Assembly: GCA_025558095.1 (NCBI GenBank)
Contig: JAIVFI010000021.1
Coordinates: 62,001-126,000 of the forward strand
DNA length: 64,000 nucleotides
Direction: 5' to 3'
DNA from: Hyaloraphidium curvatum SAG 235-1
Taxonomy: Eukaryota; Fungi; Monoblepharomycota
Part shown: piece after piece, positions 1,786-58,642 of the stretch
Layout of the letters: every line of letters starts with the position of its first letter
Position numbering within the stretch: position 1 is the stretch's first letter
Program-made: the position numbers and the translations under genes
Notes under the pieces: model-generated
Databases searched by the model: none
Seen by the model: only the letters and a program-made list of their open reading frames with translations
Told to the model about the DNA's origin: nothing

Positions 1786-2958
1786 CTAAGTCCCGGCCAA
1801 CCCCTTCATCGCCCTGCGGCACTCCTCCGCCCCCAGCTTCCCCCCCGCGAGGTCCACCATCCTCCCCACCTTCTCCCCGCACCCCAGCGCCTCGTCCAGC
1901 CCCACCACCACCGCCTCCACCTCTGCCCCCGCGAGGTCGACCACCGACCCCCGCGGGCCGTACCGCTCCCCCGCGGCGACGCTCGACGCGACCTCGCGGA
2001 AGTGGTCCGCCCGCGTGCCCTGTTCGGGGAGGAAGACGAGCAGGGTGCGCGGGAAGAGGCGGATCCAGGCGTCGAGGAGGGACAGGGAGCGGGGGAAGTC
2101 CTTGAGGCCCCCGGCGAAGAGGTCCGGGCAGAACCCCGAGGTGACGCCCGGGGCGTGCTCGAGGAAGGCGACGGCGAGAGCGCGGAGGAGGTCCTGGGAG
2201 GTCTTGGAGGATGCAGCGAGGGTGCGCAGCGCGGGGGCGTCGAAGCGGTTGAAGCTCGCGAGGTCGTGCGGTGGGATGCTATTGTAGGGCACGTCGATGG
2301 TCGGGACGGCGAGGAGCGCCTCGAGGTGCTTCTGGAGGCGGGCGGAGTCCGAGACCAGTTCCATGAGCGCGTTGCCGTTACCGCCGCGGACATTGTAGCA
2401 GGCAAGGGAGTTGAGGAGGCGCACCGCAGCGGCGCAGCCCACGGGAGATTGGGATACGACCAGGACGGTATCGAACTTTCCCCGGGCGGGCTTGGTGAAG
2501 CAGTCGCCGGAAGGGGGCCCGTTCTCGGAGAGGGAACGGATCATCGGCGCGTAGAATGCCGACAGGGCTGTGCCGGATCCCTCCTTGCCGACGAGCGCGA
2601 GGTCCGTTGCAGACAGTTTGGCGCCGCCGCCTTTGGAAACGTCCATGACGCGTCGGCGCGGCCCGCCGCGGTCCCGGCCGGTCCCGGCCACGTCCACTTC
2701 GCGGAACTCCCACGCGTCGTCCTCCGGAGGCACCGGTTTGGGCTTTTCGCCGGTTTCCCGCGCGTTGTACGCGTACAGGGCCAGCGTCACGACGGCGGCA
2801 AACAGGACGAGCCGCTGGAAGAAGAGCGGGAACGCGGCTCTGCAGCGCCGCCGGAAAATGGCGGCGCGCGATGCCTCGAAGTCGGGCCGCTGCGGCAGCC
2901 GCGGGTTGGCGAAGGGAAGCGCCGGTCGAGCGGGCGGAAAGATGAGGCCGCGAGCCAT
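1786..2958 (-). CDS. Type II membrane protein with a degenerate sulfotransferase-like domain
   Basis: Intronless ORF from ATG 2958; single TM (LVLFAAVVTLALYAY); TVLVVSQSPVGCAAAVRLLNSLACYNVRGGN resembles the sulfotransferase N-terminal motif (xIVTYGRSGSTLLxxxLNSxPGxxIRGEN); also LFPRTLLVFL. Confidence 0.45.
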   Translation of the reverse strand: MARGLIFPPARPALPFANPRLPQRPDFEASRAAIFRRRCRAAFPLFFQRLVLFAAVVTLALYAYNARETGEKPKPVPPEDDAWEFREVDVAGTGRDRGGPRRRVMDVSKGGGAKLSATDLALVGKEGSGTALSAFYAPMIRSLSENGPPSGDCFTKPARGKFDTVLVVSQSPVGCAAAVRLLNSLACYNVRGGNGNALMELVSDSARLQKHLEALLAVPTIDVPYNSIPPHDLASFNRFDAPALRTLAASSKTSQDLLRALAVAFLEHAPGVTSGFCPDLFAGGLKDFPRSLSLLDAWIRLFPRTLLVFLPEQGTRADHFREVASSVAAGERYGPRGSVVDLAGAEVEAVVVGLDEALGCGEKVGRMVDLAGGKLGAEECRRAMKGLAGT

Positions 2959-3532
2959 GGCATCAGGCGATCGCGCGCGGCGGAGCGGGGCGAGGATGAC
3001 CGCCGGTCGCGTCCCGGTCCCGAGTCGCGTTCGCAGAGGCGAAGGACGGAACGCGCCGAGGGCGCGGTGAGGCGGGACTGAAGTCACGCCGTTCGCAGCG
3101 CGAAGCGAGAAAGCGTGTCGGAAACCTCATCTTTGTACGTTCATCCGCATTCGTAGGCTAGCTCTTTCCCGCATTCTGAGTTCCATCCTCTTGCGTATAG
3201 ACAGCCAGGCTCTGGTGCTGATAGTCTCCTCAGCTCCACAGCTTCCCTACTGGTGTGGCAGCGAACCCCGATGGCACTGATCTGGGACTGTGACATCGAT
3301 AGAGCACAATGTCTGGTTGCAACAGACGAGTGAGTCGTGGGCGACACCGGATCAGTCCCCGGAGTGGACCGGAGACGCGGTGGGGCCTCACCAGCCCTGC
3401 CGTGACGCCCAAAGCTCGGACCATCGGACCACTCCATCTCGAGGCCGCAGCGCACCGCGCTCGAGTCCTGCTGCCCACCACTCGCAGCCAATCGTCTCCC
3501 CTGCCCGTCGCCTGCCTTCATTTCCCGCCGCC

Positions 3533-54612: not shown

Positions 54613-56629
54613 ATGCAGGGCGCCGCGGCCGGCCCGCCGGGCCCCGCCGCCGCCGCCGCCCGCCCCGCCCCGCCGCTTCCCGCGCTGACCGTCCCGCCCG
54701 CCCTGTCGCTGCTCGCCGCCGTCGCCGCCGACGCCCCGCGCACTCCGTCGCCCGCCCTCCCCCTCGCAGAGCCCCGCAGTCGCTCGCGGACGCCGGGCAG
54801 CGCCCCGAACGCCGCCGCCCCGCATCCCCGGCACTCCGCGAGGCGGGCCACTCCGGGCCCACTGCGCGTGCCGCGGACCCGCTTCGCCTCGGAGCAGCTC
54901 CAGCTCGCCGCCCTCGCCGGCAGCTGGTGCCAGGGACGCGCTTCCCCCACCCCAAACGCTGACACGTGTCGGGGCTTTCCCCCCCAATCGCCCTCCCCAT
55001 CGCCGGCGGCTGCCCCGGAACACGCGTGGCAGCACCGCCGCTCCGTCTCTGAGGACATACCGCCGCCGCGGCCCTTCTTTTCCGAGGATCGCGCCGCCGA
55101 CCTGACCCTCGCGCCTCTGCACCTGGGCACCCTCCTCCCCGCCATGGCCGACCCCGCGGCGCAACCGAGCGCCGAGCACCGGCACAAGCACTCCAACGGG
55201 CACTCGCTGCACGACCTGCCGCCGGAGGACCTCCCGCACAAGCCCGCCAACGGCATGCACCACGCCGACCCCGAGCTCGAGGCCGCCGAGGCGCTGGGCG
55301 GGCTGCGCCACGCCGTGTCGTCGCCCGTCCCCGCGTCGCCGCAGATGGCGCCCGAGGCGATGCCCCCGGCGTCGACGAGCCCCAAGCCGAGCAACGACTT
55401 CATCTCGCGCGTGTCAAACTACCCCGTCGTCAACTCGGGCATCCAGCAGATCAGCAGGATCTACGAGGCCGGCAAGGAGTCGCACGCCATCGTCAAGGTA
55501 CGCCGCTGCGGTGCCGTCGCCCGTCCCGTCTCCCGCTGATTCATCCCCCGCGCCCCGTTCCGCAGTTCGGCGCCGAGACGGTGGAATCCGTCGGCACCAC
55601 CGTCATCAAGAAGCTCGAACCCACCCTCGGCCCCCCCCTCCGCTCCCTGGACCGCTTCGCATCCACCTCCCTGGACCGGCTGGAGCAGTATGTCCCCGGC
55701 TTCCGCTCCGCCTCGGGCTCTCCGCCCCGCGACCCGCTCCCCCCGCCCGCCGAGCCGGAACCGGCACCGGTCCCGCCGCCGAGCCCGGGGCTCGCGCGCG
55801 CCGAGGGCGGCTACGGGGGGACGCAGCCGCTGGTGCAGCGCAAGCCGCGGAGCACGTGGTCGGCCATCGTGACCAACGTGGGGGGGTACGTGGTGAGCGA
55901 GGAGACGATGCGGGGGCTGCGCTATTGTTTGCAGTGGCTCCAGGTGGGTCGTCGCGTGCTGCTGGTCTGGTGCACCGAACTGACCAAGGCGTGATGGGTG
56001 CTGTTTTACAGTACGCCACGCAGCTCATCGACAGCCGCATCCAGCTCCTCCGCTCGTACCTCGCCCGCCTCGTCCCCTCCTCCTCCTCCACCGCCGTCTC
56101 CACCACCACCGGCGAACCCGTGCCCGACGACACGGTGGTCGCCGCCGTACGGCGGGACCTCGTCGAGACGCTGCGCGGGGTGGTGGACGTCGTCGGCAGG
56201 TACGCGGCCGTGGTGCTGCCGACCGAGTCGAGGGAGAACGTGCGGCGTTTTGTGCTTTCGCTTCCCGGACGGTGGGTCTCCCTCGCCGCATCGCGGACCG
56301 AAACGGAAGGGGCTGACGGGCACGGCACGGACAGGTTCTCCAAGCTCTCGGCGGCCGGCCCCGCGCCCGCCCCCGCGGACGACGCGCGCACGGTGCTCGC
56401 GTTCGCTTCCGAGTCGCGCACGGTGTTGGGGGGCGTCGAGAACGTCTTCCGGCAGTCGTTCGAGCGCGCCGAGGGGGTCCTGTCGCGGATCGGGTTTTCC
56501 ACGGCCGGGTGGGGGGAGAGGCCCGAGGGGGAGGGGGGACCGGGAGCGGATGGAGGTGAGGGGGCCGGGGAGGAACAACAAGGGGAAAGGGAGGATGGTG
56601 GGGGGGATGAGATGGAGGTGGACGGGTGA
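54613..56629 (+). CDS. Opi1-family transcriptional regulator, multi-exon
   Basis: AAEALGGLR, FISRVSNYPVVNS..YEAGK..VKFGAETVES, LDRFASTSLDRLE, SEETMRGLRYCLQWLQYAT, VVDVVGRYAAVVLP..VRRFVLSLPGRW; start codon uncertain. Confidence 0.85.
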
Positions 56630-56693: not shown

Positions 56694-57715
56694 CTAGTCC
56701 AGGAGGCGCACGCGGTCCCCGCCGACGTTGGCGACGAACTCGCGGATGCCGGCGCCGAAGGCCGGGTCGTCGAGCTCGGCGAGGTCCTCGAGGGAGAAGA
56801 CGAGGGCTGCCGGGGGGTCAGCACCGAACGGAGGAGGGAACAGGGCGAGGGACATACCGCCACCAAGCCTGCGGTCCGAGCGGCGCGGGGAGCGTCCCGT
56901 TTCGGGTGCGGGTTCCTTGCCCTTGCCCTTTGCCTTGTCCTTCTGCTTGCCCCTGCGCGCGCGGGGGGATTCCTCCTCCTCCTCCGGCACGGGTTCGGGG
57001 ACGGGATCGTCCTGTTCCACGGCCTCGACCTCGATCGCCTCCAGCACCACGACCCGGGGTTCGGGGGCGGGCGAGGGCTCGGTGATGAAGGCGTCCCAGT
57101 CGGGCCTGCGCTTCTCGCGCCGTGGGGGCGAGGCGGAGGGTTGGGTGCCGGCCGGGGCGGAGGCTTGCGGGGGCCGATGCCGTTCCTGCGACGCCGCGGG
57201 TTGCCCCGGCTCCGCGCGCTGGCTCTGGCTCGCCTGCGTCGCGAGCAGCGCCTCCCTCCAGTCCCTCTCCGCCTCGGGATCCCAGTCCGTCACCCGCGAC
57301 CCCGCGTGCCGCACTTCGCCCGCGGCTCCGGGCTCCCCGGGGCGGTCCTGCACGGGCGGCGGGCGCGGGGGCTGCGGGCCGGCGGCGGGGTGCGGGAGGA
57401 GGTACGCGTAGGCTGGCTGCAGTGCGCGGCGGCGGACGGAGTCGCTGACGAAGGCGGGGGAGAGCGCGGCGCGGTCGTTCTCCAGAAGCCTGGGTGGGGC
57501 GGTCAGAGCTCGGGGAGGCGGCAAACGAGGGGGGAGCAGGCGTACTCCAGGGCATTCCGGTCCTCGGCGTCCGCCGTTATGAAGTAGTCGGCTCGGTCCC
57601 GCGACTTGACGGGGAGCACCGTGCCGCCGTTGTCCCGGAAGGCCTGCTTCCAGTAAGCGTCGACCGACGCCGAAAAGGCCGCCGAGAGGCCGTCGAAGAG
57701 GGCGGCGGGGGGCAT
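56694..57715 (-). CDS. TERB2-like protein (N-terminal BRCT-like domain, disordered middle, C-terminal MAJIN-binding-like motif)
   Basis: LFDGLSAAFSASVDAYWKQAFRDNGGTV..RADYFITADAED..ALSPAFVSDSV..AYLLP; intron 57545-57490; C-terminus VFSLEDL..IREFVANVGG. Confidence 0.6.
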
Positions 57716-58291: not shown

Positions 58292-58642
58292 GGGCGAGTT
58301 CGGACAGCTGTGTCGGCTCAACTCCACTCTGCTTCGCCAAGTCCACTTCTCCGAATAGACTTCCGTTCGGGCACTGTACTTCAAGTCTACTTCGCAAAAA
58401 AGTTCCCGAACAGCTAGTGAAATATACTTCCGGCGACAAACATGTCACTCCATTTGCTGCAAGAGTACGGGTGAGCTCCACTTCAGTTCCCCAAGCACGT
58501 TCAGCTGTGTTCGCCCAAGCACGTTCAGCTGTGTTCGGGACACTTTTTGAGGTGCACTCTACTCTACTCTACTACACCCCGCAGCGGAGTTGAGTTTTTG
58601 GCGAGATAGAGTTGCAACGAAAACGAGTGTCCGAACTCGCCC
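58292..58642. mobile_element. Non-autonomous TIR element (MITE), PIF/Harbinger (Tourist)-like
   Basis: 15-bp perfect TIR GGGCGAGTTCGGACA / TGTCCGAACTCGCCC with imperfect extension; 3-bp TSD GCA (58289-58291, 58643-58645); AT-richer than flanks. Confidence 0.8.
58490..58537. repeat. Perfect 24-bp tandem duplication inside the MITE
   Basis: CCCAAGCACGTTCAGCTGTGTTCG twice. Confidence 0.9.

Follow-up and report, generated by a model that had tools for sequence, protein, structure and literature searches.

A gene of the chytrid-grade fungus Hyaloraphidium curvatum encodes a protein that begins with a BRCT-fold domain (residues ~6-91), and among known proteins the nearest sequence relative of this domain is the N-terminal domain through which animal TERB2 binds TERB1, with all scores of the comparison lying below the family thresholds. 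The reading that we prefer, with somewhat more confidence than an even chance would give, is that the gene belongs to a fungal family of TERB2-like BRCT adaptors represented in Hyaloraphidium and in Basidiomycota. The family is fast-evolving, and its 304-aa member described here is probably an adaptor-type protein of the nucleus. The origin of the TERB1-TERB2-MAJIN tether has been placed in the metazoan ancestor, and no link by sequence to the telomere adaptors of yeasts or other fungi has been reported (PMC7227075). The presence in fungi of an N-terminal BRCT-type domain that is most like TERB2 therefore suggests that a component of the tether is older than animals. In the literature searched, no paper names TERB2 and BRCT together, and TERB2 is named with basidiomycetes in one general review only.

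The gene lies in a 64,000-nucleotide stretch of DNA of Hyaloraphidium curvatum SAG 235-1, which is called the window throughout. Its coding sequence, as read from the DNA, is divided into three exons and occupies 56694-57715 of the minus strand, with the ATG start codon at 57715-57713 and the stop codon at 56696-56694 (Table 1). The translations of exons 1, 2 and 3 are identical to the database protein P0001, which is annotated as 'hypothetical protein DFJ74DRAFT_708432' (304 aa; Monoblepharomycota). P0001 contains every amino acid string quoted in the first-pass annotation of this locus, which was right in its coordinates and in its protein strings. The exons were searched singly, and the analyses that required a full-length sequence used P0001.

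Table 1. Features of the TERB2-like gene (window positions) and of the separate Rap1-like gene (contig and locus positions).
Feature	Position	Strand	Description	Basis
Exon 1	57546..57715	-	Residues 1-56, with two bases of codon 57; opening half of the BRCT/TERB2-like domain	Translation
Intron 1	57490..57545	-	56 nt; GTACGC...CTGAC...CAG	Sequence and spliced contig
Exon 2	56858..57489	-	Residues 57-268; remainder of the domain and a linker rich in Pro/Ala/Glu/Arg that carries basic NLS-like clusters	
Intron 2	56807..56857	-	51 nt, in frame; GTATGT...CTGAC...CAG	Both spliced and intron-retaining contigs
Exon 3	56694..56806	-	Residues 268-304 and stop; conserved C-terminal hydrophobic motif	Translation, basidiomycete alignment
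N-terminal BRCT-fold, TERB2-like domain	57387..57700	-	Residues ~6-91; spans intron 1	Pfam, family profile, ESM Atlas
Linker	56859..57386	-	Residues 92-267; short motifs common to basidiomycete homologs	Alignments, BLASTP
Rap1-like gene	G000:C7:462400-463480 (L019 ~2097-3180)		Very long acidic/basic N-terminal region, intron-split BRCT-looking segment, two Myb_Rap1 domains	

Fungal relatives

A HMMER search of 1.84 billion representative proteins returned a sole relative of P0001 (E 5e-7), a 280-aa protein of the basidiomycete Steccherinum ochraceum (P0002) that carries the label 'BRCT domain-containing protein' in UniRef. It is a full-length homolog, and the BLASTP alignment of the two proteins has an E of 3e-16 over residues 6-192. 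The use of P0002 as the query led to two further basidiomycete-type partial models, whose missing N-terminal exons are present at their loci (L002 and L003). The four aligned sequences, P0001 and three from basidiomycetes, have in common the N-terminal domain, stretches of the linker and a C-terminal motif, 'ALV.S...DP...[IV][KR]E..A'; two linker motifs are common to Hyaloraphidium and the basidiomycete homologs, the acidic 'LLAT..SQ' and the hydrophobic 'R.V.L'. In the ESM Atlas, the P0001 and P0002 queries are neighbored by clusters of 52 members (260 aa) and 58 members that contain Basidiomycota only. The family appears to be widespread in Basidiomycota, and its presence in the chytrid-grade fungus Hyaloraphidium suggests that it is old.

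Other search strategies returned little. Word-based searches for homologs, queried with the ORF of the window or with residues 1-100, gave back the protein itself alone, and a metagenome scan with an N-terminal pattern had no match. A scan with a C-terminal pattern pointed to four metagenome loci (L004-L007), which we rejected as spurious, the match spanning 20-27 residues only. At their C-termini the basidiomycete homologs (L001-L003) carry a tail rich in Cys, with the invariant sequence C-V-L-F-V-P-S...C-x-K-E-F-R-C-F-R-V-D, which is missing from the Hyaloraphidium protein. This tail could be zinc-binding or could form a strand that serves as a partner site.

The N-terminal domain

The Pfam cut-offs are 27 bits for TERB2 (PF15101) and 27.3 bits for BRCT_2 (PF16589, which includes the BRCTs of Rap1 and Pescadillo), and the matches described here all lie below them. 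TERB2 was the sole Pfam match of window exon 1 searched alone (E 0.014) and of exon 1 of the basidiomycete locus L003 (E 3.2e-4, 21.2 bits), and it was the top match of P0002 (E 1.2e-4, 22.6 bits, positions 6-89 of the 207 in the profile), for which BRCT_2 gave E 0.21 and 12.3 bits. With the whole Hyaloraphidium domain (P0001:1-110) the best match was BRCT_2 (21.6 bits, E 2.7e-4, positions 21-85 of the 86 in the profile), ahead of TERB2 (15.1 bits, E 0.022). The first-pass annotation had named a better score of the N-terminus with generic BRCT families as a sign against its own proposal, and this last comparison is in part what it described. The TERB2 scores of the window protein, taken as exon 1 or as the whole domain, are 15.1-15.7 bits, and no member of the family that was scanned (15-23 bits) reaches the TERB2 gathering score.

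Scores of this size could also belong to an ordinary lineage-specific single-BRCT protein, such as a DNA-damage or chromatin scaffold, whose likeness to TERB2 would come from BRCT ancestry and chance identities. We regard this explanation as rather unlikely, even with BRCT_2 as the best Pfam match of P0001, the UniRef name of P0002 and the sub-threshold level of all TERB2 matches in its favor, since it has to account for PF15101 being first or alone in window exon 1, P0002 and L003 exon 1, and for the outcome of the search in the reverse direction. In that search, profiles of the fungal domain (alignments A2 and A4) were compared with 177,635 distinct PDB sequences, and the N-terminal domain of human TERB2 (6j07_A) ranked first with E 0.0012 and 0.0024. 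The runners-up had E 0.28 or worse, with Pescadillo (E 1.2) as the best BRCT, which places 6j07_A ~10 bits above any BRCT; there were no Rap1 BRCT chains among the PDB matches, and single-sequence phmmer searches of the PDB gave no match. The TERB2 N-terminal strings that the first-pass annotation had given agree with the printed 6j07_A alignment. The similarity that it proposed for this end of the protein goes beyond chance and makes TERB2 the nearest known relative in both search directions (from the Pfam profile to P0002, L003 exon 1 and window exon 1, and from the fungal profile to the PDB), at a level that stays below the family cut-offs.

As a specificity control we used 10 true BRCT domains encoded in this genome. 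They match BRCT families only, and PF15101 is found for none of the 10 at E<=10, which argues against a plain BRCT origin of the likeness. Typical BRCTs also cross-match PF00533, PF12738 and PF16759, whereas the fungal TERB2-like domain does not. The relation to TERB2 is thus specific to the fungal family and sub-threshold throughout.

The structural evidence comes from the ESM Atlas model of P0002 only. The AF2 models are too poor for use (pLDDT 46 for P0001 alone and 42 for P0002:1-105 with a 7-row alignment) because alignment depth is lacking. The P0002 model has a BRCT fold, aligning to the BRCT_2, Rap1, XRCC1, TopBP1 and Lig4 clusters with TM 0.64-0.74 over 85-102 residues, and this breadth of matches is again what a generic BRCT protein would give. 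The TERB2 cluster (TM 0.73 over 90 residues) is level with the BRCT_2 cluster (0.74) and with the basidiomycete Rap1 cluster (0.73), and the BRCTs of XRCC1, TopBP1, PARP and Lig4 fall below these three. A comparison by ESM Atlas features places the chordate TERB2 cluster at rank 2 (0.87) for P0002:1-105, and the feature neighbors of P0001 are generic BRCT clusters, as the generic explanation would have it.

Human TERB2 (structures 6J07, with TERB1, and 6J08, with MAJIN) is like the fungal protein in having this domain at the extreme N-terminus, and the two domains have in common, within profile positions 6-89, the stretches F-x-x-S-V...GG-T-I, A-D-[FY] and a terminal [FY]-x-L-P. They differ in that the fungal domain retains the features of a canonical BRCT alpha-3 (in basidiomycetes, W-I-x-D-S-V), which are blurred in TERB2, and in that human TERB2 has a 6-residue insertion. 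The helix motif at the C-terminal end of the fungal domain resembles that of Pescadillo. The domain end, Y-L-L-P in P0001 and Y/F-V-L-D in basidiomycetes, is the counterpart of the conserved [F/Y]xLxP that closes the TERB2 N-terminal domain, and we give it little weight because generic BRCTs often end in much the same way. Tyr56 of human TERB2 is essential for TERB1 binding, and the residues in contact with TERB1 include Asp55, Glu58 and Asp59 (PMC6361898). In a by-eye alignment anchored on the 6j07_A profile match, Tyr56 appears not to be conserved and stands opposite a Leu of the fungal domain, and the acidic residues are roughly kept in P0001 (E-x-x-E-N-D) and not in basidiomycetes. The structure paper goes no further than to describe the TERB2 N-terminal domain as a sheet of three strands with six helices (PMC6361898); to us the domain looks like a derived BRCT of the BRCT_2/Rap1 type.

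The linker and the C-terminus

In P0001 the domain is followed by a linker that is disordered and bears basic clusters, and the protein ends in a hydrophobic motif that is short and conserved. The linker has low pLDDT in the AF2 model, and the disordered middle claimed in the earlier annotation is consistent with both of the poor AF2 models. TERB2 is built in a similar way, being also small (220 aa, against 280-304 aa in the fungal proteins), with a linker that is disordered and a C-terminal motif that is short, hydrophobic and conserved.

The likeness does not extend to the sequence of that motif. The C-terminal pieces, used singly or as a profile, had no match to the TERB2 profile in Pfam or to any TERB2 chain in the PDB, and the same searches detected no counterpart in the fungal C-termini of the MAJIN-binding motif (human TERB2 168-202, in which Phe192 is essential), to which these termini are not detectably related. 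The earlier proposal of a MAJIN-binding similarity set P0001 'VFSLEDL' against human 'YISIDAM'. By eye, basidiomycete 'ISVKEAL' matches the human stretch at least as well, and the family alignment pairs it with P0001 'GIREFVA' and not with 'VFSLEDL'. The two by-eye matches fall in different columns and are therefore mutually exclusive, and we treat them as chance. The proposal has no statistical support in Pfam or the PDB, and the alignments behind it contradict each other.

A profile of the C-terminal part of the family (alignment A7, P0001:262-304 and homologs) matched, in the PDB, the helix 1-loop-helix 2 portion of 8ejo, which has been identified as a DUX-family homeodomain (PMC10514451). 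We treat this match as chance or as an unexplained Myb/homeodomain-like helix pair, and its E of 0.0028 is a warning on the worth of small-profile E-values near 1e-3, the TERB2 match at a similar E included. It would fit a second rival of the preferred reading, according to which the protein is a Rap1-derived paralog with a Rap1-type BRCT and a degenerate Myb/homeodomain-like helix-loop-helix at the C-terminus, acting with shelterin-like factors. We consider such an origin improbable. The level TM of the basidiomycete Rap1 cluster and the TERB2 cluster against the P0002 model agrees with it, but no C-terminal piece has a Pfam Homeodomain or Myb match at E<=10, P0001 ends right past the second helix of the matched region and so lacks a third one, and the PDB matches of the fungal domain are devoid of Rap1 BRCTs. 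The BRCT_2/Rap1 proteins have the same fold (TM 0.73-0.74), and the fungal domain differs from them in scoring below the cut-off and in not being followed by Myb or RCT domains; Pfam found no Myb or Rap1_C match in P0001 or P0002.

Rap1, partner and meiosis genes in the genome

The genome contains a Rap1-like gene of its own, with two Myb_Rap1 domains, on contig 7 (Table 1). It has no BLASTP similarity to P0001, which counts against a Rap1-derived paralog and excludes P0001 as Rap1 itself or as a recent Rap1 copy. The BRCT-looking part of the contig 7 gene was undetected by Pfam exon by exon, its pieces being too short to score. Two further loci, L008 (G000:C6:404975-405283) and L009 (G000:C28:381178-381486), carry BRCT_2 domains that are paralogs and have an internal insertion in common; the L009 match contains an in-frame TGA, which could be due to an intron or to a decayed copy.

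Six-frame searches of this GC-rich, intron-bearing genome gave no candidate for MAJIN (PF15077) and nothing for PF15101 and PF11626, though the same search was blind to the window's own gene, both with PF15101 and with the positive control P0002, against which BLASTP scores the protein at 3e-16. Since the P0002 control was missed, the negatives of six-frame family searches on this genome are not readable as absence. Matches above the cut-off were obtained in the same genome for the Spo11-type TP6A_N and for Mnd1. With these matches, the capacity for meiosis does not hinge on the TERB2-like gene, and the earlier suggestion that this gene implies meiosis in the lineage adds little to what these two matches already indicate.

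Proposed role and relation to known adaptors

As a TERB2-like BRCT adaptor, the reading that we prefer, the fungal protein would be a two-handed bridge, as in TERB2. Its BRCT-like head may clamp a helical motif of one partner while the C-terminal motif may dock on a second partner. The TERB2 N-terminal domain would then be a BRCT_2/Rap1-type BRCT in derived form, and the fungal family would be the intermediate that exposes the link.

The first-pass annotation went further and proposed a TERB2 ortholog. The N-terminal kinship and the matching architecture speak for this claim, and the sub-threshold scores and a C-terminal match that could not be reproduced speak against it. That the fungal family is genuinely orthologous to TERB2 and attaches telomeres in meiosis is plausible but, in our view, unlikely. 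If it were so, a bridge from a telomere protein to the inner nuclear membrane, with a modified Rap1-like BRCT as its head, would already have existed in the opisthokont ancestor, a proposition that we put forward as tentative. It is likewise doubtful that non-yeast fungi still use such a bridge for the meiotic bouquet, with TERB1-like and MAJIN-like partners, as the ortholog reading would have it.

The Bqt1-Bqt2 pair of fission yeast and Ndj1 of budding yeast are small, fast-evolving adaptors that connect a telomere protein to a SUN protein of the nuclear envelope (PMC7227075). If the TERB2 reading is true, the fungal family would play a role of the Bqt1-Bqt2/Ndj1 type in fungi. To our knowledge, Bqt1-Bqt2 and Ndj1 are without a BRCT domain and are known from ascomycete yeasts only, and we know of no TERB1 or MAJIN in fungi. 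A family whose head lies between BRCT_2 and TERB2 would explain the origin of the TERB2 N-terminal fold, and it would supply a definite candidate for the adaptor at the meiotic telomeres of basidiomycetes and early-diverging fungi, one that is amenable to test in species whose meiosis is synchronous. Should the kinship fail, the protein is one more orphan BRCT protein.

Transcription and neighboring DNA

In the sequence, both introns begin with GT, end with AG and contain a CTGAC branch site, and both are precisely absent from contigs of run X1 (for intron 1, with CT..AC on the plus strand). This is the sole public run that contains the locus; its RNA label was guessed, but the spliced contigs show cDNA, and for this reason we conclude that the DFJ74DRAFT_708432 gene is real and transcribed. 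A chance ORF or annotation artefact with no functional gene behind it, for which one could invoke the long ORFs that this GC-rich DNA yields in all frames, is extremely improbable against canonical introns spliced in RNA-type contigs and a full-length homolog in a distant phylum with motifs in common along the whole length. The fungal gene is transcribed in a culture sample (one run), whereas TERB2 is germline-restricted.

Intron 2 is represented in run X1 by a spliced contig of depth 39 and an unspliced contig of depth 61. As it is in frame and without a stop codon, its retention would add 17 residues just ahead of the conserved C-terminal motif. At the other end of the gene, an RNA-type contig of the same run extends to 57725, and coverage ends ~10 nt upstream of the ATG.

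The convergent neighbor (window 55511-56629, plus strand) is a gene for an Opi1-family transcription factor (PF08618, E 1e-22) that is spread over two frames or more. An RNA-type contig (56400-56807) connects this gene, through the stretch between the genes, with the 3' end of the TERB2-like gene, and the 3' ends of the two genes therefore abut or overlap. On the plus strand at window 58481-58528, the 24-nt stretch cccaagcacgttcagctgtgttcg occurs twice in tandem.
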